A DNA stretch of 64,000 nucleotides, from NCBI GenBank assembly GCA_028826165.1, contig JAPDFW010000123.1, forward strand, positions 100,776 through 164,775. Reading direction: 5' to 3'. Made by a program: the position numbers and the translations under genes. A model generated the notes under the pieces. That model was not told the origin of the DNA. It ran no database searches and was given only the letters and a program-made list of their open reading frames with translations. This document shows positions 2,705-54,772 of the stretch, piece after piece; positions within the stretch are counted from its first letter, which is position 1, and each line of letters begins with the position of its first letter. Origin of the DNA: Anaeramoeba ignava BMAN (Eukaryota > Protista > Anaeramoebae).

Positions 2705-3874
2705 TTAATTGTTTTTTTTGTTTTTTTTCTTTTGAAAAAGTTTATGAAAAAGTTTTCGACTTGTTTCTGGATTATCTGCAGCTTGAAACCCAGAAAAATG
2801 CTTATTAGAATTTCTATGAATATTGTTTTGAACCGTTTTATTTGATTTTTTGTTTAATATTTTTCTTTTTTTTTTGGAATTATTTTTGGAATTATTTTTT
2901 TTTGGTGAATTTTTAGGTTTTTCTAAATTTGAGTTAAAAACTTGATTTTGATTTGATTTCTCGCTTTGATTTGGAATTGCTAAATTTTGAGCACCAACTT
3001 TTTGTTGGCGAATTTTCTCTCTTTCTTTTGGAAAAGGTTTTCTTTCCTTGAAATTTTTTCTCTTTTTTTGATTTTTTTGATTTTTTTGATTTTGATTAAC
3101 TTTTTGTTCGGAATCTTGAGAATAATTTACTTTTGAGACTCTAATAGGTCTTTCTTTAAGAATCTCACCATTCAATTGCAAAGCAAAGGGGACTGATTTT
3201 CTATGTTTAAAATTGACATAAGCAAATCCTTTTCCACGACGAGTAAATTTATCTCTAACAATATGAACATAATTAATCTCTCCGCATTCTTTAAAGAAGT
3301 CTTGAATCTCCAATTCTGTTACATTATAATTCAAGTTGCCAACAAATACACAAAGTTTTTCATTATAATCCTTTTTATTTTCCTCCAAACAAACATGTAT
3401 TTTATAGCCTTCAATTTCAATCCCATTCATTTTAACTGCTTTTTTTGCTGATTCTTTATTTTCATATAATAAATAGCAATTTTGAGTCGGCGAAACTTCT
3501 TTATCAATTTCTTTTTTAATTGCTGATACTTTTTTGGGCTTGATTTTTTTATCTGGTAAAATTTCAAATGCCGTTGATCTAAATCTTATTGATTCTATTT
3601 TCCCAAATTCTTTGAATATTTTTTCCAGTTTTTTCTTTTTTATTTCAACTGGTAAATTTCCTATGAAAATTGTTCTTTGATTTATTTCTTCTTTTTCTTT
3701 TTTTGTTGGTTTTGTTCTTGTTTTTTCTTTTTTTCTGTTTTTTAATTTTTCTTCAAGATTTTTTTGATTTATTATTTTTTGTTCATTTGTTTGTTTTTCT
3801 GAAATTGTTGTTGGTTTTGAAGAGAGAATATCAAGTAATCTATTTTTTTGGTTTGAGTTTGATTCCTGATTCAT
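2705..3874 (-). CDS. RBM34: RNA-binding protein 34 / Nop12-like nucleolar protein with two RRMs
   Basis: Single 389-aa ORF with RTIFIGNLP...FGKIESIRFRS and VFVGNLNY...VRDKFTRRGKGFAYVNF, plus basic tails. Confidence 0.85.
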   Translation of the reverse strand: MNQESNSNQKNRLLDILSSKPTTISEKQTNEQKIINQKNLEEKLKNRKKEKTRTKPTKKEKEEINQRTIFIGNLPVEIKKKKLEKIFKEFGKIESIRFRSTAFEILPDKKIKPKKVSAIKKEIDKEVSPTQNCYLLYENKESAKKAVKMNGIEIEGYKIHVCLEENKKDYNEKLCVFVGNLNYNVTELEIQDFFKECGEINYVHIVRDKFTRRGKGFAYVNFKHRKSVPFALQLNGEILKERPIRVSKVNYSQDSEQKVNQNQKNQKNQKKRKNFKERKPFPKEREKIRQQKVGAQNLAIPNQSEKSNQNQVFNSNLEKPKNSPKKNNSKNNSKKKRKILNKKSNKTVQNNIHRNSNKHFSGFQAADNPETSRKLFHKLFQKKKNKKNN

Positions 3875-4170: not shown

Positions 4171-7100
4171 TTAACCAAGTCGATTTAAAACAGGATAAAT
4201 CATTTCAGAAGTAACACCACAATCACCATTACGAGAAAGTCTGATAAAACCATTTTCACCCCAATCTTCTCCCCATGAAAATTTAATTAACCAATAATAT
4301 GGATTGGAATTAATATCAGAATAATATCCAGCAAGAAGAGCTGCATAATTAACAACATTTTCTTGACAATAACTTGTATCAAAAATTCCTGATTGATAAA
4401 ACATTATTTCTTGTGAACTTGCATCTAACATTACTTTTAATTTTAATTTTAATTTTGAAATTGATTTTAATTATGATTTTGATTTTGATTTTAATTTTGA
4501 TTTTAAATTTTGATTTTAATTTTGGATTTTAATTTTGATTTTAATTTAGATTTTAATTTTGATTTTGAATTTAATTTTGATTTTAATTTTATTTTGATTT
4601 TTAATTTTTTTTTTTGATTTTAATTTTTGATTTTAATTTTAATTTTAATTTTAATTTTAATTTTAATTTTAATTTTTTAATTTTAATTTTGATTTTAATT
4701 TTAATTTTAATTTTAATTTTAATTTTAATTTTAATTTTAATTTTAATTTTGATTTTAATTTTGATTTTAATTTTGATTTTAATTTTAAATTTTAATTTTA
4801 ATTTTGATTTTAATTTTGATTTTAATTTTAATTTTAATTTTAATTTTAATTTTAGTTTTTTTTAATTTTGATTTTTAATTTTAAATTTTTTTGAATTTTG
4901 ATTTTAATTTTGATTTTAATTTTGATTTTAATTTTAATTTTGATTTTAATTTAAATTTTAATTTTTGATTTTGATTTTAATTTTAATTTTAATTTTAATT
5001 TTAATTTTGATTTTAATTTTGATTTTAATTTTGATTTTTATACTGGACAAAGGTCCAAAAAACCATAAAGCATATTCTGCTTGAGAAGGATCAATTTGAG
5101 TTGAATAATTAATAGAAGCTTGCATTATATCATCAGTATAAGCACAATAGCTTTATTAATAAATGAATAAATTAATGAATAAATGAATAAATAAATAAAT
5201 GAATAAATTTTCAGTTTTTTGAATAAACTACGCTGAAAATCCAAGAAAAGGATAAATTGAATCAAGAGCAATTCCACCAGCACTTATCATATCCTTAAAA
5301 GCTTGTGAAGTTGAACCACCATGACATCCACTATTATTTTCTGAACAATCAATAATATCTTGAACACTAAAATTAGCCAATTCTCCTGTTGAAAAAAAAT
5401 ATTGTCCTTCAATAGCTCCTGCAACTGAAAATGCCCATGAAGCTCCACAGAATTCTTGATCTTTAACTGCAGAAATTGCTCCAAGTTCAACCCATGATAA
5501 ATTACTTGGTAATGTGTAATCTTTTATTGGTTTTTCAATCATTTTTGTTGATTGGAATTCTTTTTTTGGAATATATTCTGAATTTATTAACAAATTATTT
5601 CTGAATTCTTCATGTGTAAGATCTGCGAATTTGTTAATACCGACTTAAAGAATTGAATAATCATTTTAATTTTAATTTTAATTTTAATTTTGATTTTAAT
5701 TATAATATTAATTTTAATTTTAATTATAATATTGATTTTAATTATAATATTGATTTTAATTTTTATTATTAAATCTATACGTTTCATAGTTTCATGATTT
5801 TTGTTAAAATTTTCGATAAATTCTGAATTTGAATTAAAAATTGTTTCTCTTTGTTTTAATTCAGTGATATTTTCATATTTTTTGGAATATTTTTGAAGAT
5901 AACCATGAAATTTATGGTTGAACCTTTGTTTATTTTCACTAGGAAATAAACTTCTCAAAAAATTTGAATTTATACCAAAAGTATATTCAGCTAAATTAAT
6001 TAATAAATAAATAAATAAATAAAGAATATTATAAATATAAATATTATAAATATAAATATTATAAATATAAATATTATAAATATAAATATTATAAATATAA
6101 ATATTATAAATATAAATATTTTAAATATAAATATTATAAATATAAATATTATGAATATAAATATTTTGAATATAAATATTATAAATATAAATATTTTAAA
6201 TATAAATATTTTAAATATAAATATTTTAAATATAAATATTTTAAATATAAATATTATAAATATAAATATTATAAATATAAATATTATAAATATAAATATT
6301 ATAAATATAAATATTATAAATATAAATATTTTAAATATAAATATTATAAATATAAAATTATAAATATAAATATTTTTGAATATAAATATTATAAATATAA
6401 ATATTATAAATATAAAATATTATAAAATATAAATATTATAAATATAAATAAATAAATATAAATATTTTTAAATATAAATATTTTAAATATAAATATTTGA
6501 AATATAAATATTTTGAATATAAATATAAATATGAATATTAAAATATAAATATTTTAAATATAAATAATATAAAATATAAAAATAAATATTTTGAATATAA
6601 ATTTTATTATAAAAAATATTATAAATATAAATATTTTGAATATAAATATTATAAAATATAAAATATTTTTAAATATAAATATTTTAAATATAAATATTTT
6701 AATATAAAATTATAAATATAAATATTATAAATATAAATATTATAAATATAAATATTTTGAATTAAATAAATATAAATATTATAAAAATATTATAAATATA
6801 AATATTTTAAATATAAATATTATAAATATAAATATTATAAATATAAATATTTTAAATATAAATATTATAAATATAAATATTTTAAATATAAATAAATAAA
6901 TAATATTTTAAATATAAATATTTTAAATATAAATATTTTATAAAAGGAAATGAATAAATCAAAGATCACAATTTTGAGTTTGAGAAAAATTCGTTGAACA
7001 AGTTGGTGGAACTACAAAAAGAGAACTATTTACATCTGTAACATAAGAAAAGTAATCAAGACTTTTTGAAAAAAATAAAAATTTAGATTAAAATGATATT

Positions 7101-27167: not shown

Positions 27168-30100
27168 ATGACTCAATCAAATACAAATTTACCAAAAGAT
27201 GATACAATTAAACTTCAAGATCAAATTAAAAATATTAAATCAAAATATGAAGAACAACTTCAACAAGCAAATGTTGAAATTGAAAAATTAAAACAATCAA
27301 AATTAAATCAAAAAATTTATTTTGAACAAATTTTAAGCAATTTTGAAAAGAAAAGCTTTAAATCACAAGAAAAGAAAAACCAACTTAGACAAAAATTACA
27401 ATTAGAAAAGCAAGCAAAAGATGAAGCAAAACAAGTTAATTTTCAAATTCAAGAGAAATTATCAACTTTTAAAGTTCATTCTCATAAAATTAAAAATCAA
27501 ATGAAATTATTAACATCAGAAGCTCAAAATAAATTATCTCAAGAAATATCTAAAATTGAACAACTTATGAATAGAGTTTATCAATTTAAATTTTTTATTC
27601 AATCTGTTCGATATCAAAATGATTTCCAAAAAAAGAATATTGATGACTTAGAAAGTAAAAAACAAAACAAAAACAACAAAAAAAAATTTTTTTTTTAATT
27701 TTCCGTTATTTTTCTTTTATTTATAAAAAAAAAAAATTAAATAGATAAAATTATCAATTTAAATGAAACTATTAAATTATATAAACAAGAAAAACAGCAA
27801 ATTGAATATCAATTAAAGCAATCTCAACAACAAAATGAACCCATTTCAAGAGAAAATTCAAATCTTAAAGAAGAAATTGAACTTTTAAAAAATCATCAAA
27901 ATCAAATATCAGCAAATTACAGAAAAAAAACGCAAGAATTAATTGAATTTCAATCACAATCTATGGAAAAGGAAAATATCTTGAAAAAGTTTCTTGAACA
28001 GAAAAAAAGCGCAATTTCTCAGTTAAAAAACGAGAAGGAAATTTTATCCAAAGAAAACAGCAAAGCAAAAGAAAAACTGGATCAATATCTATCGAATATT
28101 CAACGTTTAGAAATGGAAATTATCCAAAAGGAAAATGAAATTTCAGAATTTATTCTACAGAAAAACAACAATTTTCCGCAAGAAAATGAATTTCAACAAA
28201 ATTCACAATATCCTATGTTTGATCGTTTTATTCAGAATATGATGAAAAAACACGAAGAAGAATGCCAAAAATTTGCACAAGAAATTGATTTTTTGAAAAA
28301 CAAAGATAATTTCCAAGAAATCTTCAATCAAATAAACGAGGAAGCCAATCGAAAAAACCAAGAGTTGGAAGAGAAAGTTGAGATGTACAAATCCAGTATT
28401 GAAAAAAGTGAAATCTATGAATCCAAATGCGCGGATTATGAACAAAGACAAATCCCGCATTACAAGCAATTGATTTCCGATTTGAATTCTCAAATACAAG
28501 AATTATTAACCCAAATTGTCAAAACAAAGCATGAGTTTGAGGAAAAAGAAATCAAGCAAAATATGTATCGAGGCTATTCAGAAGAACAAAATGCTCAGGA
28601 TGATTCAAGTCAAGAAATTGAAATGGATGATTTAGTTGTGTATTCAAACATCCCCGAACTTCAGCAAAAAAACCAGCAACTCATCCAAAAAGTTCGTATT
28701 TTGGAAAATAGTTTCAATTTGTTGAAAACCCAAAATAAGGATTTGGAAGTGGAAAACAACAAACTCAACGATGTAATCAATCTCTATCAGCAAAAAATTG
28801 ACAATGGCCATATAGAAACTCAGCAAGAAAATCTCCAGAAAGAATTTGAAATTTATATTCGAGAAAAAACCCAAGTTATTAAAAATCTACAAGAAGATCT
28901 CCATCAATTCAAGCAAATATCACAAAAATTAACCACAGAAAAAAAAGAACTTGAATTGCAGACTGAATTAGAAAATGAAAAACGAATTATTTTGGAAAAT
29001 GAAAAGGAAAGTCTTATCTATCAGAATCAATCCCTCTCAAGTCTAAACAAATCTTTAAAGAACGAGAACAAAAATCTCAAACAAACAAACACTGAATTAA
29101 CCGAAAATCAAAAAGAACTGCAAAAAAATATTGCAAATTTAAAGCACGATATTCAGCAATCTGAAAATGAAAAACTGAAATTACAAAGTGATATTTCAAA
29201 TTTATCCAAAATGAATGAATCTTCAGAATTGGAAAGACAGAGATTTCAGCAAATAATCTTCAAAATTGAGTCATCAAACAAAGAATTGGAAAACAAACAC
29301 TTTAAAATTCAGCAAAAATTGCAAGAGGAAATTGATTATCATAAAGGTCTTTTGGAGTTAAAAGACAAAAACCTGAAGAGTGAAGTTGATAAAATTGCCA
29401 AATTAAAATTGCAAATTCTTGAAATGAATGACAAATTAACGAATCAAAAACAGAAAGTAAAGCAATGGGAACTAAAGTTTTTGGATTTGAAAAATAAAAC
29501 AAAAGAAGAAAAGCAAAACGAAAAGAAAGAGGAAAATTTGGATAAAAATATTGAAAATATTGAAAATATTGAGATGGAAAATGAAATGAAAGAGAAAATT
29601 TCTGATCAAAAACAAACAGATATTCAAATGGAACCAAAATATTTAAATCAAATGAATTTGGAAGAGGAAATTGCTGAATATAAGTTTAAATCTATTGAAC
29701 ACCAAGGACAAATCAATTTCTTGCAATCAAGTTTAAATCAATACCAATTACTCAATTCAAAATTAAAAGATCAACTGGAAGACATGAAGCAGCTAAATCA
29801 ATTAGAAGTGCAAAAAATGGTGAAAAAGATTCAGGATCTTGAAAAACAACTACAGAATTCAAGTTCTAAAATTCAAGATCTTTCACAAGAAAAAATATGG
29901 AAGGAAGAACAAATATATGAACTACAACTACAAATTGAAAGGAAAAGCAAAGAAAATAGTTTTACAAACACCACATTTGATCATTCTCAAGTCAAAAAAG
30001 ATTTTGATAATCTTCGCAAACTTTATTTAGATTTTGAAAAAAAATATCAAAACGAAATTTCTTTGCATTCATCCGATTTCCAAAAAATGAATCAATGCAA

Positions 30101-32562
30101 AGATTTTTCACACAAATTTGAAAATGAAATTAAGGAAATGCATACAACAATTCAAAAAATCACTGCAGAAAAAGAACTTCTTGCTGAAAGAAATCAGCAA
30201 TTATTACAAAATCATGAATTGGAAATGGATAAAATGAAGGATATTTTGCATCAATTAAAATTGGAAAATCAGCAAATATTCCAAAACTATAACGAAAAGT
30301 TAAAATCTTTATCTAACACAAACGAAGTGAATTTGCAATCAACAATCCCAATTTCAAATCGAGATGAGAAGCATTTGACAACTACAATGTCTGAATTAGT
30401 TGAAATTAAAAAAGAAAATGAACATTTGAAGATTTCAATTCAAGAACTTGAAATGGAACGTAATAACTTGTCTCAAAAAATTCAAAATTTTAATAAAATG
30501 GAAGAAGAAACAAACGAAAATGAAATTCAAAATCAAAATGGAATTCAAAATCAATTTAGTGTTGAAAACCAACAAAAAGAAGCCATTTCTTTGTTAGTTA
30601 AAAGCAATCAATTTTTAAGAGAGAAAATCAAAATTACACTTTCTAATTTGCACGAAATTGAACTGAAAGTTGAAAATTATGAATCTCAAAAAGAAAATGC
30701 ATATCAAAATATCAAAAATCTGGAAAATCAATTGAAAAATTTAGAGAAAATAAATATCCAAAATGAAGAAGAAATTTTAAGATGGAAAAATAGAGTTTAT
30801 TATTTATTGCAAAATAAGGAAAGTAAATTTGTTTTGAATAAGAACGAAGAAATGTTTATTGATCTGCATAATCTTCTTTTCAATTCACCAGAACAAAAAC
30901 TACGTAAAGAAATAACAGATTTACAATCTGTTATTGATAATTTGCATCAAGAAAAGGAACAAATCCAACAAAATTTGAAACAACAAAAAAATCAAATTGA
31001 TAAACTCAAAAAACAAACAAATAGCTTACAACAAAAATTGGAAGAAAAAGAAAATGAAATTAAGAAAATGGTTTCGGAAAAAGAAGACCATTTGAAAATG
31101 ATTGAAAATTTAAAGCCACTCCTCAATTTATCAAGACAATTTGAAACTCGATATAAAGATTCGGAATTAAAAATCACAAATTTAACTCAAGAACTCGCAG
31201 ATTCACGTTCATTGAATACAAACCTAGAAAAACAAATTGAGTTAATTAACCAAGATTTGAAAAATCAAGATTTATTTACAAAACAAGTTGCAAACTTAAC
31301 AAATCAAAAGGAAAAACTTGAAAATGAATTGAAAAGAATCATTTCATCTTCAAAACAAAATGAGAAGAAATTACAAGATGATTTGAATATTTTATCCTCA
31401 AGTATTAAAGATAAGGATCAAGAAATCAAAAAACTACAAGAAGGTTCTTCAAATTGTTTAAATCGACTTAAAAAGGCAACCAATTTATTATTTGTTTTGA
31501 AAAATAAAATTTCAGAAATATCCCAAAAACAAAATTCTTCAGAAGGAACAAGAAAACATTTACAAAATGAAGAAATTAAAGTACTTCCATTTGTGAAAAA
31601 CGAAAATCAAGATTTTTCAAACCAATTGAAAAGAGGGAAAACAAATCAAATCCAAAGCGAAAATGAAAATGATTTGAAAATTAATTTAAAAAATCTTCCT
31701 TCTGATAAATATTCTACTTTATTAGGACTACCTAATCCATTATTTTCAACTCCTTCATTTAAAAAATTGATAAACATTCCTCTTACCCCAAAAGAATCAT
31801 TTAATCAATCAAATACAAAATCTAAATACAAATACAAATTCAAATTCAAATTCAAATACAAATACAAATACAGATTTAAATACAAATACAAATACAGATT
31901 TAAATACAAATACAAATACAAATACAAATACAAATACAAATACAAATACAAATACAAATACAAATACAAATACAAATACAAATACAAATACAAATACAAA
32001 TACAAATCTAAATACAAATACAAATACAAATACAAATACAAATACAAATCTAAATACAAATCTAAATACAAATACAAATACAAATACAAATACAAATACA
32101 AATATAATTACAAAATCAAATACAAATACAAATACAAATACAGATTTAAATTCAATTACAAAATCAAATTCAAATTCAAATCTAGATTTAAATTCAAATA
32201 CAAATACAAAATCAAATTCAAATTCAAATTCAAATTCAAATACTGGAGAAATTCCAAAATTACAACTTTTTCACAATTCATTTAGTTCTTTTCTTAAAAA
32301 GAAAAATCAAAACCAAAATCAAAATTTAAATTTCAATTTCAATCGAAATCAATATCAACCTTTATATCAACCTCCATATCAACCTCCATATCAACCTCCA
32401 TATCAAAACCAAAATCAAAATCAAAATCAAAATTTATATATGAATTTCAATCCAAATCAAAACTTTCATTTCAATCCAAATCAAAATTTTAATCAAAATC
32501 CAAATTTCAATCCAAATAAATTCCAAAATCCAAATTTTAATCAAAATCAAAATCAAAATTAA
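27168..32562 (+). CDS. TPR: Nucleoprotein TPR/Mlp1-like nuclear basket coiled-coil protein
   Basis: Long coiled coil with LVVYSNIPELQQKNQQL, YQNEISLHSSD and EEEILRWKNR, resembling TPR/Mlp motifs. Intron 27655-27743. A one-base shift near 31820 turns the KY tail into an NT-repeat then QPPY/NQ tail ending at TAA 32562. Confidence 0.75.
31825..32240. repeat. (AATACA)n / (AAATTC)n coding microsatellite in the TPR C-terminus
   Basis: Read directly from the sequence. Confidence 0.85.
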
Positions 32563-33274: not shown

Positions 33275-36200
33275 ATGACATCTTTAGAAAGATTTCTTTC
33301 TTCTTTAAATAAAACAAGTGTTCAAGAGCAATTTGTAAAAGAAATTAAATTGAAATTAAATTGAAATTAAAAGAAATTAAATTGAAATAAAAAGAAATTA
33401 AATTAAAATTAAATTGAATTATAATTTTTTATTAAAAGGCAGGAGAAACAAAATTACATCAAGCGGTTAAAAATTTTAAAGGTGATGAATTAATAAAAGC
33501 ATTAATAAAATTAAAACATTTAGAATCACCTTTCCTTGAAGATTCAAATGTGAGAAGAGAAAAAATCAAATTTAATCAAATGAAAAAAAAAATTTATGAA
33601 AAAGAAAAAAAAAATTTTTTTCTCATAATTTTAGTCAAAAACTCCATTATATTATGCTATAAAAAATAAATGTGAACCTGAAGCTATTGAATTATTAATG
33701 GAATTTAAACCAGATTTTAATAAAGAAGTTGTATAAAGAAAAAAAGAAAATAGAATAATAATTTTTAATTATTTATATTTAATAATTTTTAATTTATATT
33801 TTAGGAATATGTAATTTAATATTAATATTATTATTATTATTATCATTTTGATTGATAATTTCAGAATTCATTTTCATCTTCTTTTTATTTTAATATTAGA
33901 ATTTAACTTATTTAGATTTTGCTTTTTCAGTTAATTCTCCAGTTAAAACTATTGAAATTTTACTGGAAAATGGAGCAAATCCAAATTTTAGACATGTAAA
34001 TTAATGAAAAAATTTAAATTTCTATTGATAATTTTATTAAAAAAAAATAGGGAGTAAAAAATTCTATTTTTAAATCATCTTAATTCATTCATTCATTTAT
34101 TCAATTTATAAATAATATTTTAGTCTGTAAATTATTTATATTCAAATTAGTTTGAATTCAATTTCTTAAATTTTAATTTTTAGACTGAAACACCATTTCA
34201 TTTTGCAACAAGATATAAACAACCACCAGAGGTTTTTGAATTATTAGTTAAATATCATGGTGATGTTAATGCTGTGAATGTAATTAATACATATTTGTTA
34301 GAAATGGAAAGAAAAATGATTTGGAATTTGATTTTTTCTATTTTTTAGTCTGTAAAAAAAAAATATTATCAAAATTATTAATATACTTAATTTGGAAATT
34401 TAAAATTACTTTCTTTCTTTCTTTCTTTATTATTAAAAGGGAGTAAATTTATAATTAAAACTTTTTAGTTAAAAATAATCATAATTTAAATTGAAAAATA
34501 TTTAATATATAGAATGGAAGTGTTCTTCATTGGGCAACATTTTATGATTCTAATCCAAAATGTGTAGAAATTCTGTTAAAAGCTGGAGCAAGAATTCATG
34601 ATACAACTGTTTATTATTTTATTTTATTTTATTTTAAATAAATATAGAAATATAAATATTTATATTTTTGTTTTAGAATGTAAATTTAATGTTATTTTTT
34701 TGATTTGATTTGATTTGATTTGATTAAAAATAATTTTTTAGGATGTAAAAAATTTATTGAAATTTTATAGTGATTTAAATTTAATATTAATAATTATTTC
34801 AGGGAAGAAACGCATTACATTATGGAGTTCAAAGGAATTTTAATATTGAATCTGCTAAAGTGTTAGCAAAATATGGGCAAAATATGGATTCACAAGATGT
34901 ATTTTATTTAAATTAATTACAAAAAAAAATAATAATCAAAAAATGATAATTTTCAAAAATAGAGCGTAAAAATTAAATTAAATTATGAATATATTTTTGT
35001 TTTCTTATTTCTTTGAAAAAGAAAGTCAGTAAAAAAATTTGAGGAAATTTTTTCTTGTTTTTTTCTTGAGAAAAATAAAATTAAAATTAAAATTAAAAAT
35101 TATTTGATTTATAGGGAAATACTTGTTTGCATTTTTTTTCTGATACAAAAAATCCAATTAAAATGTTAGAAACACTTCTTGAACTTGGAGCAAATCCAAA
35201 TATTTGCAATGTATTATTTAATTGAATAAAAATGAAAATAATAAAATAATGAAAATGAAAATGAAATAGAAAGTAATTATTTAATCGAATGAAAAGAAAA
35301 ATTTGACAAATTTTATTAAATATTTTTTTTTTTGGTTTTATAAAAAAAAGGTTGTAAATTTATTTAAAATTTTCATTTAAATTTGTTTTGGAAAAAAAAT
35401 ATGGAAATTAAATTGAATTGAAAATTGAAAAATATTTAGAGGAAAACACCACTTGAAATTATAATATCCAAAAGAAATTCAAGAGAAGATTCAGAGGATT
35501 TAATAAAATTATTATTAGATTATGGAGCTGATGTTTTTCTTCCTGAAGTGAGAAAAACAAACCAAAAAAATATATAGAAAAGAAAAGAAAAGAAAAGAAT
35601 AATTATTATTATTATTATTTTTATTAGGAAAAACCATTAATAGATAACGTAACAGATGATATAAAGGATATAATATTAGGATATAGTGGAATTTGTCGAG
35701 ATATAATTTCCTTTTTAGAAAGACAAGAATTTGGAGATGCAAAATTTAAAACTTCAGATGGAAAAGAAATAACGATTCATTCATTTATTATCAAATTTAG
35801 ATTTGAGGAAGATATGAATATTAATAATTTGATTAGATTGTTAGAAAGTAAAACATATAGTGAATCAATGGGGATTTTAAAATCAATTTATTCAGGATTG
35901 GGATGGAAAGAAGAATATGAAAATATGCTCAAAGATATTGGAATTAATACAGAAAAAATAGCTCAAAAAAAAGGAAAAAAGGGATTAATTAAAGATTTGA
36001 AAATTTTATTTAATCATGAAGAAAGTAAAGACTTCACTATTTATGTTGAGGAAAAATATATTAAAGTTCATAAATTAATATTAATAATAAGAAGTGATTT
36101 ATATCGAGGAATGTTTTTAAATGTTCAAGATGATTCAAATTCAGTTCATGATTATTCAAGAAACTCCTTTGAATCTGTTTCTGCTTTGATTTATTTTTTT

Positions 36201-36431
36201 TATATGGATGAATTCCCTCAAAATTTAACTGATTTAAATATTGAAGAATTAAGTGAAGCTCATGATTATTATGAACTTCATGGAAAAAATCTTGATTTTT
36301 ATTTTGAAAAATTCAAGAAGAAAAAAAATTCAAAAAAGAAAAAGAAAAAGAAAAAGAAAAAGAAGAACAAAAATGAAAATGAGAATGAAAATTTAACAAA
36401 AAAAAATACAAGAAATTGCAATATTTTTTAA
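33275..36431 (+). CDS. Ankyrin-repeat + BTB/POZ protein with polybasic-CaaX tail; 21 exons including 11 microexons, about 564 aa
   Basis: Exons: 33275-33334, 33439-33549, 33635-33730, 33805-33810, 33900-33995, 34051-34053, 34124-34126, 34184-34279, 34349-34351, 34440-34442, 34513-34608, 34677-34679, 34742-34744, 34803-34898, 34963-34965, 35026-35028, 35115-35210, 35270-35272, 35351-35353, 35440-35547, 35628-36431. All 20 introns are GT-AG, phase 0 and 55-104 nt. BTB motif KDFTIYVEEKYIKVHKLILIIRSDLYRGMF; the protein ends in poly-Lys...CNIF. Confidence 0.88.
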
Positions 36432-36702
36432 ATTCAATTCAATTCAATTCAATTCAATTCAAAATCGGAAAAAAAAAAAGTAATAAGGAAATATTTTTTT
36501 TTCAATTTTGTTTTGAAAGTTTTAATTTTTTTTTTCTTCCAATTCAATAAAAGTATTTTTTTTTTGTTTTACAAAAGATTCCTTATTATATTATTTTTTT
36601 TTTTTTTGAAAGAAAAAGGAAGAAGAGGAAGAAGAGGAAGAAAGAAAAAAGAAAAAAGAAAAAAGAAAAATAAATCGAATTCTTTCATTTTTCCTTTTTC
36701 AA

Positions 36703-39191
36703 TTAAAATTTGGTATCTTGTTGTAAACGATTTTGAAGCATTAAAATTTGTTTTTGTAAATTTTGAAGTTTCTTTTCTTTTCTTGAAAGTTTTTTTTTCA
36801 TTTGATGAATTTTATCAATATTACCAAATAAATTTTTAGATAAAATATCTGAAATTTCTGGACGAGAATTTGGATTAGAACTTGTCATTTCAAGAATTAA
36901 ATTTGAAATCTTTTTTTTTATTATTTTAAATTTTAATTTTTAATTTTTAATTTTTAATAATAAAAATAAAAATAATAATACATCAGGATATTTTTGGATA
37001 AAATTTGAAGGTAATTTATGAGTTTTGCGAAGTTTTAAAATTAGCTTCTTATTTTCTTCTTGAGAAGTAAAAGGATAAAGCAATTCAAATAAAATGATGC
37101 CTAAAGAATAAACATCAGATTTTTGAGAACAATTTTGGGAATTTTCCAATTGTTCTGGACTAATATATTTATTTTTCATTCCCCAATTTTCTTCTCCATA
37201 ACTTATTCCAGTTGAAATTCCAAAGTCACTAATTTTAACTTTGTTTGATCGACTTGGATTTACAAATATATTTTCTGGTTTTAAACGGAAATGAGCGATT
37301 TTTCTTTGATGACAGTACTCAATTCCTTGTAAAATTTGTTGGAAAACATTCTTTACTGCAATAAAATTTATTCCATTTACTTGGTTAATTCTGTTCCATG
37401 ATGCTAAATTGTTGAAATCGCAAAACTCCATTTGAATAAATAGAACAAAATCACATTTTTTTTCTGAAATGACTTTGTGCTGTCTTGAAATGAATGCTTC
37501 TGAAAATCTTTCTATCATGATTCCTACATTTTCTGTTAATTCCTGATCTTTTTGATTTTGTTCTACATCTTCATTGCAAAATATAGTTTCTTGAAAGTTA
37601 TGGTTTTCTTTTGATTTTGTTCTTGAATTAGATTTTGTTCTTGATTTTGATTTTTGGATTTTCTTTTTCTTGAATTTGTTCTTGTCGTTTTCAGTTTGGT
37701 TGAATATCACTTCTTTGTTTTCATCTTCAATAAATTCCACATCTTCCAAATTTTCTAACAAATTTTGTGAAAATTTTGGTATTTTCTGACGATAAAAAAC
37801 ATCATTAGAATCATCAGTAAATAAACCATTATTAATACTATTTTGTGTATTCCCATCATTTTCATCAGTGTTTTCTTGACTGAATCTGGAGTTTTTTCTT
37901 ATTTTTGGTGTAGAATGATCATCATTTGGAAAATTAAAGGAATTTTGATGAGATTTGTTAAAAGATTTTGATGAAAATAAATCACTTTCATTTGAAAGAA
38001 TTTCAGAATCACTTTCTGATTGTGTTAGATCATTAATTGATGAACTTCGAGAAAAAGAAACAGTTTCCTCCCAGAAGTCAAGCCAAGTCTTTTATATATT
38101 TTTATATATATTTATATATTTAATTATTTAATTATTTTTTTATTATTTTTTTAGTTATAATATACACTATAATAACGAACAATGCTTGGGTGACTTAAAG
38201 TTGCTATTTTCTTTACTTTTTCAAGTGCTTCTTTGAGATTTTGTGATACTAATGGTATTTTCTTAATTGCATATTCTTTTCCATCAATAACATTTTTTGA
38301 AGAATAAATAGCTCCATTTGGTCCTTCTCCAATTTTACAAATTTCTCTGAAATTGGAAGAGTACCAATTTAATTTTAAGTAATGTAATGGATTTTCGTAA
38401 TTACTTTGCATTAAATTGGTTGTTGATTGTTGCATTTTTGGTTCTATTGCTGATTGAAATGATGAATTTTGGAAAAATGGAATATCTTTAAATTGTTTTT
38501 CAATTTCTGTTTCCAAAGGTTTTAAGCTTTTAGTTTTTTTCATTGGGGCTTCAATACAAGCCAATTCTGCGTTTCTTTTAATTATTATTTAAATTATTAT
38601 TAAAATTTATTATTAAAATTATTATTAAAATTATTATTAAAATTATTATTAAATTTATTATTAAATTTATATATTATATTTATTATTAAAATTTATATTA
38701 AAATTATTATTAAATTTATTATTAAATTTATTATTAAAATTATTATTAAATTTATTATAAAATTATTATTAAAATTATTATTAAAATTATTATTAAAATT
38801 ATTATTAAAATTATTATTTAATTGATTATTAAAATTATTATTAAAATTATTATATAAAATTTATATTAAATTTTCTATTAAATTTTCTATTAAAATTTTT
38901 GGATTACAAAAACAAATTAGGAAGAGATTGAGAAGTTGTAAATGAATCTTTTGTTTGAAGATTTGATTTGGATTGAAAAAGAAATCTTCGAATAAGATCA
39001 ATTTTAATATTACTTGGAAGAAAATGTTGATCTTGTTCTCTTAAATTAAATTTTGCTTGTAATTGAGGAAAAAGTTGAGAGAATAATTCATTTGTAAATT
39101 TATTTCTTGATGGTTGACGTTTTAATGAACTTGTAGTTAATTGAATTGTTTGTTTTGGTGGAATTGAAGTTGAAAAAGTGTGATTTTGCAT
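36703..39191 (-). CDS. eIF2-alpha kinase family (HRI/GCN2-like) protein with long kinase insert; probable pseudokinase
   Basis: FREICKIGEGPNGAIY, IDGKEYAIKKI, LSHPSIVRYY..WL, acidic insert, LFIQMEFCD, KVKISDFG, YISPEQ and KSDVYSLGIILFEL; four exons. Confidence 0.85.
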
Positions 39192-50000: not shown

Positions 50001-50137
50001 AAGAAAAGATTTGAAATGAATTTAATAAAAAAAATATCAAAATAAAAAGTACTTACAATGGCTGTAGATCCAAATCCTATTTTTTCAATTAGTTTATAAG
50101 ATGCTGAACTCGTTGGATATTTTTTTTGTGTTTCCAT
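47096..50137 (-). CDS. STE20-family kinase, OSR1/SPAK/Fray-like
   Basis: IGFGSTAIV|[69 protein letters not shown]; N/S/Q-rich tail. The C-terminus is uncertain and may extend into the 46630-47075 repeat. Confidence 0.9.
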
Positions 50138-50357
50138 TTAATTTATAAAATAAAAAAACAAAAGCAAATAATTGATTATTTTGATTATTTTAAGTATTAT
50201 TTTATATTAAATTTAAAATTGAAAAAAAAGAAAAAATAGAAAAAATAAAATTAAAAAAAATAATTTTATTAAAAGATTGGAAAACAAAAAAAAAATGACA
50301 AAATAAAGAAAAACTGACGAATTTTTTGTTTGAAAGTTTTTTTCAATTTTTCACTTT

Positions 50358-53300
50358 AAAATTAATATAAAATTGATTTAAAATTGATTTAAAATTGATA
50401 TAAAATTGATATAAAATTGATTTAAAATTGATTTAAAATTAATATAAAATTGATATAAAATTGATTTAAAATTAATTTAAAATTGATTTAAAATTGATTT
50501 AAAATTGATATAAAATTAATATAAAATTAATTTAAAATTGATATAAAATTGATTTAAAATTAATTTAAAATTGATATAAAATTGATTTAAAATTAATATA
50601 AAATTGATATAAAATTGATATAAAATTGATTTAAAATTGATTTAAAATTGATTTAAAATTAATTTAAAATTGATATAAAATTAATTTAAAATTGATATAA
50701 AATTGATTTAAAATTGATATAAAATTAATATAAAATTGATATGAAATTGATTTAAAATTGATTTAAAATTGATATAAAATTGATATAAAAATTGATATAA
50801 AATTGATTTAAAATTGATATAAAATTAATATAAAATTGATATAAAATTGATTTAAAATTAATTTAAAATTAATATAAAATTGATTTAAAATTAATATAAA
50901 ATTAATATAAAATTGATTTAAAATTGATTTAAAATTAATATAAAATTGATATAAAATTAATTTAAAATTGATATAAAATTAATATAAAATTGATTTAAAA
51001 TTGATATAAAATTGATATAAAATTGATATAAAATTGATTTAAAATTGATATAAATTTGATATAAAATTGATATAAAATTGATTTAAAATTGATTTAAAAT
51101 TGATTTAAAATTGATATAAAATTGATATAAAATTAATTTAAAATTGATATAAAATTGATATAAAATTGATATAAAATTGATTTAAAATTGATTTAAAATT
51201 GATATAAAATTGATTTAAAATTAATATAAAATTGATATAAAATTAATATAAAATTGATTTAAAATTGATTTAAAATTGATTTAAAATTGATTTAAAATTA
51301 ATATAAAATTGATTTAAAATTGATTTAAAATTAATATAAAATTGATATAAAATTGATTTAAAATTGATTTTAAAATTGATTTAAAATTGATTTAAAATTG
51401 ATTTAAAATTAATTTAAAATTAATATAAAATTGATTTAAAATTAATTTAAAATTGATTTAAAATTGATTTTAAAATTAATATAAAAATTGATTTAAAATT
51501 GATATAAAATTAATATAAAATTGATATAAAAATTAATATAAAATTGATTTAAAATTGATTTAAAATTGATTTAAAATTGATTTAAAATTGATTTAAAATT
51601 GATTTAAAAATTGATTTAAAATTAATTTAAAATTGATATAAAATTGATTTAAAATTGATTTAAAATTAATATAAAATTGATTTAAAAATTGATATAAAAT
51701 TAATATAAAATTGATTTAAAATTGATTTAAAATTGATTTAAAATTGATTTAAAATTAATTTTAAATTAATATAAAATTAATTTAAAAATTGATATAAAAT
51801 TAATTTAAAATTAATATAAAATTGATATAAAATTGATATAAAATTAATTTAAAATTGATTTAAAATTTATTTAAAATTAATATAAAATTGATATAAAAAT
51901 TGATATAAAATTAATATAAAATTGATTTAAAATTGATTTAAAATTGATATAAAATTGATTTAAAATTGATTTAAAATTAATATAAAATTGATATAAAATT
52001 GATTTAAAATTGATTTAAAATTGAAATAAAAATTGATATAAAATTGATTTAAAATTGATATAAAATTAATTTAAAATTGATATAAAATTGATTTAAAATT
52101 AATTTAAAATTGAAATAAAATTGATATAAAATTGATTTAAAATTGATATAAAATAGATTTAAAATTGATATAAAAATTAATATAAAATTAATATAAAATT
52201 GATTTAAAATTAATATAAAATTGATATAAAATTAATATAAAATTGATTTAAAATTGATTTAAAATTGATATAAAATTGATATAAAATTAATTTTAAAATT
52301 AATTTAAAATTAATATAAAATTGATTTAAAATTGATTTAAAATTGATATAAAATTAATTTAAAATTGATATAAAATTGATTTAAAATTGATTTAAAATTA
52401 ATTTAAAATTGATTTAAAATTGATATAAAATTGATTTAAAATTGATATAAAATTGATTTAAAATTAATTTAAAATTAATATAAAATTAATTTAAAATTGA
52501 TTTAAAATTGATATAAAATTGATTTAAAATTAATATAAAAATTGATATAAAATTGATATAAAATTGATTTAAAATTGATTTAAAATTTGATATAAAATTG
52601 ATATAAAATTAATTTAAAATTGATTTAAAATTGATATAAAATTGATATAAAATTGATATAAAATTAATTTAAAATTGATATAAAATTGATTTAAAATTGA
52701 TTTAAAATTGATTTAAAATTAATATAAAATTGATATAAAATTGATATAAAATTAATATAAAAATTGATATAAAAATTGATTTAAAATTGATTTAAAATTG
52801 ATATAAAATTGATTTAAAATTGATATAAAATTGATTTAAAATTGATATAAAATTGATATAAAATTGATATAAAATTGATTTAAAATTGATTTAAAATTGA
52901 TTTAAAATTGATATAAAATTGATTTAAAATTAATATAAAATTGATATAAAATTGATATAAAATTGATTTAAAATTGATTTAAAATTGATTTAAAATTGAT
53001 TTAAAATTGATATAAAATTGATTTAAAATTAATATAAAATTGATATAAAATTGATATAAAATTGATTTAAAATTGATTTAAAATTAATTTAAAATTGATT
53101 TAAAATTGATTTAAAATTAATATAAAATTAATTTAAAATTGATTTAAAATTATTTAAAATTTTAAAATTGATATAAAATTAATTTAAAATTGATATAAAA
53201 TTGATATAAAATTGATTTAAAATTGATTTAAAATTGATATAAAATTAATTTAAAATTGATATAAAATTGATTTAAAATTAATATAAAATTGATATAAAAT

Positions 53301-54772
53301 TGATTTAAAATTAATATAAAATTGATATAAAATTGATTTAAAATTGATTTAAAATTAATTTAAAATTGATTTAAAATTGATATAAAATTAATATAAAATT
53401 GATTTAAAATTGATTTAAAATTAATTTAAAATTAATATAAAATTAATTTAAAATTGATTTAAAATTGATTTAAAATTGATATAAAATTAATATAAAATTG
53501 ATATAAAATTGATTTAAAATTAATTTAAAATTAATATAAAATTGATATAAAATTGATATAAAATTGATATAAAATTGATATTAAAATTGATTTAAAATTG
53601 ATATAAAATTGATATAAAATTAATTTAAAATTAATTTAAAATTGATATAAAATTGATTTAAAATTGATTTAAAATTAATTTAAAATTAATATAAAATTGA
53701 TTTAAAATTGATTTAAAATTGATTTAAAATTAATTTAAAATAGATTTAAAATTGATATAAAATTGATATAAAATTGATATAAAATTGATATAAGATTGAT
53801 TTAAAATTAATATAAAATTGATATAAAATTGATATAAAATTGATATAAAATTGATATAAAATTAATATAAAATTAATTTAAAATTGATTTAAAATTGATT
53901 TAAAATTAATATAAAATTAATTTAAAATTGATTTAAAATTGATTTAAAATTGATATAAAATTGATATAAAATTAATATAAAATTGATATAAAATTGATTT
54001 AAAATTGATTTAAAATTGATATAAAATTGATTTAAAATTGATTTAAAATTAATATAAAATTGATTTAAAATTGATTTAAAATTGATTTAAAATTAATATA
54101 AAATTGATATAAAATTAATTTAAAATTAATATAAAATTGATTTAAAATTGATTTAAAATTGATTTAAAATTGATATAAAATTGATATAAAATTGATATAA
54201 AATTGATATAAAATTGATATAAAAATTAATTTAAAATTAATATAAAATTGATATAAAATTGATATAAAATTGATATAAAATTGATTTAAAATTGATTTAA
54301 AATTGATTTAAAATTGATTTAAAATTGATATAAAATTGATATAAAATTAATTTAAAATTGATATAAAATTGATTTAAAATTGATATAAAATTGATATAAA
54401 ATTGATTTAAAATTGATTTAAAATTGATTTAAAATTGATTTAAAATTGATATAAAATTGATATAAAATTGATATAAAATTGATTTAAAATTGATATAAAA
54501 TTGATTTAAAATTGATTTAAAATTGATATAAAATTAATATAAAATTGATTTAAAATTGATATAAAATTGATTTAAAATTAATATAAAATTGATATAAAAT
54601 TGATATAAAATTGATTTAAAATTGATTTAAAATTGATTTAAAATTGATATAAAATTAATATAAAATTGATTTAAAATTGATATAAAATTAATATAAATTT
54701 AATATAAATTTAATTTAAAATTGATATAAAATTAATATAAAATTGATATAAAATTAATTTAAAATTGATTTT
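50358..54772. repeat. Intergenic satellite with 11-bp unit AAAATTRATWT, about 400 copies
   Basis: Units AAAATTGATTT, AAAATTGATAT, AAAATTAATAT and AAAATTAATTT are interspersed over 4.4 kb. Confidence 0.95.

Follow-up and report, generated by a model that had tools for sequence, protein, structure and literature searches.

Probable single-codon microexons at the hairpin positions of ankyrin repeats in the ankyrin-BTB genes of Anaeramoeba ignava

Introduction

Where are the hairpin residues of ankyrin repeats encoded when the exons that carry the repeats are two codons short? The question is raised by an ankyrin-BTB gene of Anaeramoeba ignava BMAN, which lies at 33275-36432 on the + strand (ATG at 33275, TAA at 36430-36432) of a stretch of 64,000 nucleotides (nt) from contig JAPDFW010000123.1 (positions 100,776 to 164,775), called the window throughout. 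The window is very AT-rich, with a G+C content of ~20%. A preliminary description of it noted that the gaps between the 96-nt ankyrin exons hold AG-NNN-GT cassettes, in which a single codon is framed by an acceptor and a donor site, and interpreted the cassettes as pairs of microexons for the variable hairpin residues and as a candidate diversification system. In the present analysis, the cassettes are very probably genuine microexons for ankyrin positions 2 and 3, included constitutively or mostly, and inherited and multiplied together with the repeat unit, to judge from the sequences of this gene and its paralogues.

In ankyrin repeats, the x-x positions of the D-x-x-G hairpin contact the target and are randomised in libraries of designed ankyrin repeat proteins (DARPins). 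Exons of one codon have been described singly: 3-nt microexons are reported for Drosophila homothorax (PMC7392893), MAP4K5 (PMC8632122) and cytohesin-1 (PMC6314551), and a report on plants concerns microexons that annotation misses (PMC8831610). The preliminary description knew of no system like the one considered here, and our literature searches, in which such single 3-nt microexons of animals were found, agree. No publication linking Anaeramoeba with microexons was retrieved, and the passages on introns in the A. ignava genome paper and in an A. pumila preprint discuss them without microexons.

Results

The annotated protein is two residues short at each hairpin

The product of the gene is an ankyrin-repeat and BTB/POZ protein. 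The ankyrin part matched Pfam Ank_2 with 116.5 bits (cut-off 27.3; E = 8e-34) and Ank with 91.1 bits (cut-off 21.1), and the last exon matched BTB/POZ (PF00651) with 47.3-47.7 bits (cut-off 20.5; E = 2e-12 to 3e-12). By analogy with proteins of this composition, it is a probable Cullin-3 substrate adaptor. An exhaustive protein search identified the public model of the gene as KAJ5067967.1, denoted here as P0001, a protein of 555 residues annotated as 'ankyrin repeat-containing protein [Anaeramoeba ignava]'. In this model, the 96-nt exons are joined directly and the cassettes are skipped, which bears out the expectation that gene predictors would miss them. When P0001 was aligned to DARPins and ankyrin-R, a 2-residue gap was needed at every hairpin, at the D-x-x-G turn.

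The cassette codons correspond to consensus positions 2 and 3 of D-x-x-G-x-T-P-L-H, and their inclusion restores the D-x-x-G spacing, as had been claimed. At the junction of the 96-nt exons reading ...AATTTTAGACAT / ACTGAAACACCA..., for example, GGA-TCT stands between the two exons in the microexon model, whereas the exons are joined directly otherwise. With the microexons, each repeat has 34 residues compared with the canonical 33, the one extra residue being located in the inter-helix turn. At one junction of the annotated model, an aberrant 'NVNLI' arises from the acceptor of the AAT cassette (34677) combined with a wrong donor. Considering that gene identifiers in the supplement of the genome paper look Augustus-style and that RNA-seq was mapped with HISAT2, this junction may reflect an intron hint from reads. 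In another annotated model of the family, P0007, a 6-nt microexon, GATAAT, is already included.

Cassettes divide the gaps between ankyrin exons into putative short phase-0 introns

Six in-frame exons of exactly 96 nt with ankyrin translations were found where the preliminary description had placed them, together with all ten of its 3-nt cassettes (Table 1). In each cassette, the acceptor is TAG or AAG and the donor is GTAA. When computed, the last five gaps were split by the cassettes into introns of 55/70/57, 69/88/70, 68/62/58, 64/60/86 and 59/78/86 nt, all in phase 0, in agreement with the range of 55-88 nt given earlier. The same description had left the first gap (33731-33899) empty, and in this respect it needs correction, since that gap holds one 6-nt cassette, GAATAT, which would account for both missing hairpin residues. 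All 11 cassettes of the gene thus have a canonical AG acceptor and GT donor on the gene strand. In the gap 34899-35114, a third, overlapping AG-AAA-GT is a by-product of the TCA cassette. The hairpin between exon 2 and the next repeat is encoded contiguously, and the 85-nt intron that follows exon 2 contains no cassette.

The introns flanking the microexons in this gene, 55-89 nt in length, have the size of functional introns of the organism, for which the genome paper gives a mode of 76 nt and a shortest intron of 35 nt. The annotated 'introns' of the ankyrin genes measure 190-290 nt, and thus are about three modal introns long.

The arrangement extends across a large paralogue family

More than 145 relatives of the BTB exon were found in the A. 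ignava genome, and the first 11 relative loci likewise carry cassettes upstream of the BTB exon on the gene strand. To describe the junctions, we used a sample of 20 paralogue loci of ~9 kb each and a hidden Markov model of the ankyrin exon, built from this gene and iterated, and examined 78 consecutive ankyrin-exon pairs. Loop length was taken as the number of residues that separate the conserved N of G-A-D-x-N from the T of T-P-L-H, for which the canonical value is 7. The exons encoded a loop of 5 residues in 65 of the 78 pairs, and exactly two AG-NNN-GT cassettes were present in the gap at 47 of these 65 junctions (median gap 219 nt). Several further five-residue junctions had one 6-nt cassette in a gap of ~150 nt, and a junction with 7 exon-encoded residues had a single 72-nt intron and no cassette. 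The two-residue architecture is not confined to the gene first described and extends to the whole ankyrin-BTB family of the genome.

The annotated proteins of the family show the same complementarity from the other side. Their loop length is bimodal, with 5 residues in 114 cases and 7 in 218, and the 5-residue loops lack exactly loop positions 4 and 5. In intron-poor paralogues such as P0043 and P0014, 7-residue loops are encoded contiguously; for P0043, a single open frame at C111 covers residues 50-345. A 198-nt exon of one paralogue comprises two repeats and a contiguous loop, which corresponds to 96+3+3+96. In a paralogue on contig C61, the start of the ankyrin exons is shifted by one residue to a later position, and three gaps combine a 4-residue exonic loop with three cassettes (4+3=7). 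This gene is present as an inverted duplicate (L039/L040; G000:C61:332962-335983 and 391660-394681) with one gap of seven cassettes. Judged by eye, all 24 cassettes are kept between the copies, and the differences fall mainly inside the mini-introns, where 28 substitutions and 23 indels were counted over 2,265 nt of intron interior. An automatic count placed 5 events in cassette footprints, which by eye are alignment slips in the A-run after GTAA, and the test was given little weight.

Longer runs occur at L014 (G000:C109:88000-96900, gene on the - strand; oriented positions 5731-7080), where single gaps between ankyrin exons contain six and eight or nine single-codon cassettes, evenly spaced 59-85 nt apart. 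The annotated protein of this locus, P0003, joins the exons flanking these runs directly.

The spacer of three nucleotides is strongly preferred

The pattern AGNNNGTAA had 31 matches on both strands of the window, compared with 10.55 +/- 3.03 in shuffled sequences. Ten of the matches lie on the + strand within 1.3 kb, where ~0.1 would be expected, and other spacer lengths gave just 2-9 matches per strand in the window. A chance origin of the cassettes is excluded. In 56 paralogue gaps, AG-N3-GT occurred 110 times, compared with 10.9 +/- 3.3 in shuffled sequences, and spacers of 2, 4 and 0 nt occurred 3, 2 and 3 times, respectively.

We searched the genome (42,843,398 bp, 147 contigs) for TTAG-N-GTAAA with different spacers and obtained 346 matches for N2, 1102 for N3 and 185 for N4, so that a spacer of 3 exceeds the other two in frequency by a factor of 3-6. 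The comparison among these three spacers served as the null, because a reversed-pattern control matches common coding words and is not useful here. A strict tandem-pair pattern had 294 matches genome-wide, many of them in runs. Given that 25 of 94 verified cassettes match the strict TTAG-N3-GTAAA pattern, the N3 excess of ~840 suggests, as a rough estimate, ~3,000 single-codon exons in the genome, which may nearly all lie in ankyrin genes. In the fetched loci and the window, 166 of 179 intron-like cassettes had a same-strand ankyrin exon no further than 500 nt away, in a sample that is biased because the loci were chosen upstream of BTB exons. In the 64-kb window, which is unbiased in this respect, there are ten strict 3-nt cassettes, all in this gene, and one doubtful match elsewhere.

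Cassettes resemble codons and the intervening segments resemble introns

None of the 94 cassette codons from the 47 two-cassette gaps is a stop triplet, compared with a frequency of 8.5% in intron interiors (P = 2e-4). GAT accounts for 16% of them compared with 1.1% in the background, a 15-fold enrichment, and TTT is depleted. The encoded residues (N, K, D, Y, S and others) resemble those at positions 4-5 of the contiguous 7-residue loops in the family.

The 141 mini-introns of these paralogue gaps are all 53-146 nt long, with a median of 70 nt. If two cassettes were placed at random in each gap, the probability that no segment in all 47 gaps is shorter than 53 nt would be ~1e-57. Donors of the form GTAA follow at least 69 of the 94 paralogue microexons and 26 of the 47 96-nt exons, and the acceptors listed are TAG or AAG. 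When the mini-introns were aligned with one another, the mean score was 0.083 within gaps and 0.079 between gaps, which is no difference. The segments have diverged beyond recognition; as such, either the introns change rapidly or the arrangement is of great age. Their mutual similarity provides no evidence that the mini-introns were duplicated recently or belong to a mobile family.

Discussion

A proposed model of constitutive microexons

In the explanation that we favour, positions 2 and 3 of the D-x-x-G hairpin would each be encoded by one 3-nt phase-0 microexon, one junction using a shared 6-nt microexon instead, and each microexon would be flanked by ordinary short introns of ~55-90 nt, in which a GTAA donor is combined with a T/A-rich ...AG acceptor. 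Because the introns are so short, the spliceosome presumably recognises each mini-intron singly, by intron definition. Splicing would then take out the three segments of a gap in succession, leaving both codons in the mRNA. The true product would then have ~564 residues and canonical 7-residue inter-repeat loops, compared with the annotated 555 residues and loops that are two residues short. Most likely, the unit consisting of a 96-nt exon, an intron, a codon, an intron, a second codon and a third intron was passed on by descent and multiplied as repeats and genes were duplicated. The sequences show directly the anatomy of the gaps, its departure from chance, the codon-like properties of the triplets, their complementarity with the loop residues encoded in exons and the spread of the arrangement across the family, and this indirect case for coding microexons is strong. 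Inclusion in mRNA, the order in which introns are removed, this origin and the Cullin-3 adaptor role are what we infer from genomic sequence.

Several points weigh against this explanation. A 3-nt exon leaves almost no room for factors that bind both of its splice sites simultaneously. The bias among the cassette codons could partly come from splice-site context, position -1 being mostly T or A. Runs of 6-9 single-codon cassettes in some paralogue gaps are not explained by a simple inherited 2-codon unit; as a speculation, a process might add units of intron and codon, or convert AT-rich insertions in the loop to introns. Direct joining of the 96-nt exons in the public gene model is a point of little weight, because neither predictors nor short-read aligners are able to place exons of 3 nt. 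Finally, no transcript-derived ankyrin-BTB protein was found in homologue searches with the annotated protein, the last exon and a 50-sequence BTB profile as queries, or in an exhaustive search of representatives; the ankyrin-BTB proteins returned were annotation-derived only.

Alternative explanations

The cassettes might not be exons at all. Each gap of 190-290 nt would then be one long intron, as in the public annotation, the AG...GT pairs would be decoys or decayed relics, and the 5-residue hairpins would be real. However, relics or decoys would not avoid stop codons (0/94) or be enriched in GAT, nor would they space every segment at 53 nt or more, agree in number with the absent residues or persist intact in a duplicate that has diverged, and the composite gaps are about three times the modal intron length of the genome. 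This makes the reading quite improbable. A still fainter chance belongs to an introner-like mobile element with a 3-bp target duplication, for which the 3-nt spacing would be mechanistic and not selected. Such an element would suit the strong genome-wide preference for spacer 3 and the runs of up to 7-9 units of intron and codon, but the mini-introns lack mutual similarity within or between gaps (0.083 vs 0.079), and adjacent cassette codons differ, so they are not duplicated target sites. The absence of stops and the match to the missing loop residues would also be unexplained by it. Recursive splice sites, in which AG and GT are juxtaposed, were considered as well and rejected on the spacer counts of the 56 gaps (N0 = 3, N3 = 110).

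A different question is whether genuine microexons are alternatively included. The preliminary description had proposed that splicing could yield up to 2048 theoretical isoforms, with up to four states per junction, or that the introns may isolate codons for exchange between paralogues; under alternative inclusion, many binding surfaces would be obtained from each gene. Combinatorial inclusion would be facilitated by the symmetry of the gene, since exons and microexons are all in phase 0 and any skipping stays in frame; the codons occupy target-contacting positions, at which the alignment of P0001 to DARPins has gaps, and the hugely expanded family is consistent with pressure for diverse binders. 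We found no support for either proposal, and some of the evidence leans mildly against diversification. A gap always has as many cassettes as are needed to complete the canonical loop, without mutually exclusive alternatives; the sums are 5+2, 4+3 or 5 plus one 6-nt cassette, and the surplus over positions to be filled that would mark a Dscam-type or micro-exon-gene-type system was not seen. Skipping would alter the length of the loop and not the identity of its residues, the donors of the microexons are strong (at least 69/94 GTAA vs 26/47) and lack the weak-site signature of regulated exons, and intron-poor paralogues work with fixed 7-residue loops. It is therefore unlikely that the microexons are alternatively included to diversify binding. 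That Anaeramoeba ankyrin-BTB adaptors vary the length and shape of their hairpins by combinatorial splicing of single-codon exons is likewise doubtful. If it were so, the binding surface of a repeat protein would be diversified somatically, by splicing, in a genome tolerating thousands of 3-nt exons and runs of up to 7-9 of them, and such a system would be of high interest; the A. ignava data give it no positive support at the present reading, and we hold out little expectation of it.

Comparison with known systems

Like the microexons of animals and plants, the favoured microexons of A. ignava have canonical AG/GT sites, a frame-preserving length and a location in surface loops, and are missed by predictors and read aligners. 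Microexons of animals and plants are isolated exons in long introns and are often regulated, whereas those of A. ignava form pairs or longer runs, are separated by introns of ~70 nt and occupy an equivalent place in each repeat across dozens of genes, with an estimated ~3,000 microexons in a 43-Mb protist genome. In the micro-exon genes (MEGs) of Schistosoma, which encode secreted proteins, the greater part of the coding sequence consists of exons of 6-36 nt, and alternative splicing is documented. MEGs share with the present genes the symmetric, phase-preserving tiny tandem exons and the proposal of protein variation by skipping, but in A. ignava only the hairpin codons are microexons, the protein is of an intracellular ankyrin-BTB type and protein variation is a proposal.

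In recursive splicing, ratchet points consist of AG directly followed by GT, that is, a zero-length exon. Internal acceptor-donor pairs likewise divide a longer intron into steps in A. ignava; unlike in recursive splicing, the spacer is 3 nt and not 0, and therefore 3 nt would stay in the mRNA. With DARPin libraries, the microexon codons share their location at positions 2 and 3 of the beta-turn, which is an analogy of position only. The order of ankyrin repeats followed by a BTB domain is that of the Ankyrin-BTB/POZ Cullin-3 adaptors, in contrast with which the family here has more than 145 copies.

If transcripts confirm the microexons, no known set of single-codon exons would come close in density to that of A. 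ignava. The architecture, if true, would set a new lower bound on what the spliceosome handles routinely and would provide a natural system for intron definition around 3-nt exons, and it poses the problem of how single codons at one and the same place in a repeat acquired introns on both sides. In that case, hundreds of ankyrin models in the published annotation would be wrong by two residues per repeat, at the target-binding hairpin, which would affect structural or evolutionary use of these proteins and expose a blind spot of standard annotation pipelines.

Transcriptome matches of other BTB proteins

The EukProt transcriptome matches among the homologues were a WD40-BTB protein (P0057) and two RCC1-BTB proteins (P0196 and P0199). 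The gene of P0057 has plain introns of 64-117 nt and no microexons, and the locus of P0196 is essentially intronless. Compared with L034 (G000:C46:601696-605265), P0057 is exact up to residue 410 and then diverges, to 79% across the BTB part. Its 90% cluster contains no annotation-derived counterpart, and it may represent either a paralogue or a transcript assembly that is chimeric. P0196 aligned to L037/L038 (G000:C9:55988-60042) in two overlapping 98% pieces in different frames, which suggests either that transcript and genome differ by a frameshift or that a very short intron is present.

Feature coordinates and additional observations

Table 1. Exons and putative microexons of the ankyrin-BTB gene, in window coordinates
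Feature	Position	Strand	Remarks
Exon 1, 60 nt, ATG, 20 codons	33275..33334	+	P0001 residues 1-20; followed by gtaaaag
Exon 2, 111 nt, N-terminal capping ankyrin repeat	33439..33549	+	
96-nt ankyrin exon 1	33635..33730	+	SKTPLYY...NKEV
6-nt microexon GAATAT (E-Y)	33805..33810	+	tag-GAATAT-gtaattt; introns of 74 and 89 nt
96-nt ankyrin exon 2	33900..33995	+	
3-nt microexon GGA (G)	34051..34053	+	tag-GGA-gtaaaa
3-nt microexon TCT (S)	34124..34126	+	tag-TCT-gtaaat
96-nt ankyrin exon 3	34184..34279	+	
3-nt microexon TCT (S)	34349..34351	+	tag-TCT-gtaaaa
3-nt microexon GGA (G)	34440..34442	+	aag-GGA-gtaaat
96-nt ankyrin exon 4	34513..34608	+	
3-nt microexon AAT (N)	34677..34679	+	acceptor used by the annotated model, with wrong donor
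3-nt microexon GAT (D)	34742..34744	+	tag-GAT-gtaaaa
96-nt ankyrin exon 5	34803..34898	+	
3-nt microexon AGC (S)	34963..34965	+	tag-AGC-gtaaaa
3-nt microexon TCA (S)	35026..35028	+	aag-TCA-gtaaaa
96-nt ankyrin exon 6	35115..35210	+	
3-nt microexon AAA (K)	35270..35272	+	tag-AAA-gtaatt
3-nt microexon GTT (V)	35351..35353	+	aag-GTT-gtaaat
Last ankyrin exon, 108 nt	35440..35547	+	RKTPLE...; next intron plain, 80 nt
Last exon, 267 codons + TAA, BTB/POZ	35628..36432	+	100% identical to P0001 289-555

Cassette-like motifs were also seen at two places elsewhere in the genome. On the - strand at G000:C60:118861-119143, at least 5 consecutive AG-NNN-GTAA cassettes lie 63-70 nt apart, as overlapping matches of the pair pattern. 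At L022 (oriented 2989-3728; G000:C72:382100-391000), five copies of ...gaattag-AAA-gtaaatcaa... are spaced ~100-260 nt apart with no ankyrin exon near, which looks like a tandem repeat that contains the motif by accident.

An Rfam scan of the window gave no match, the opposite strand of the gene region has no open reading frames (ORFs) of note, and the tandem repeats within the introns are ordinary AT-rich simple repeats. On the - strand at 36700-38600, convergent with the 3' end of the ankyrin-BTB gene, a neighbouring gene resembles a protein kinase, as judged by eye from the reverse translation. Upstream, at 27963-32285 on the + strand, a 1,440-codon ORF has a coiled-coil-like part followed by long repeats of Asn/Thr and Gln/Asn/Pro codons, with AATACA units around 31780-32250. 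The region 50001-54000, ~4 kb at 7-8% G+C, has a GC skew of up to +1.0, so that its + strand is nearly devoid of C, and is presumably a long simple-repeat tract.

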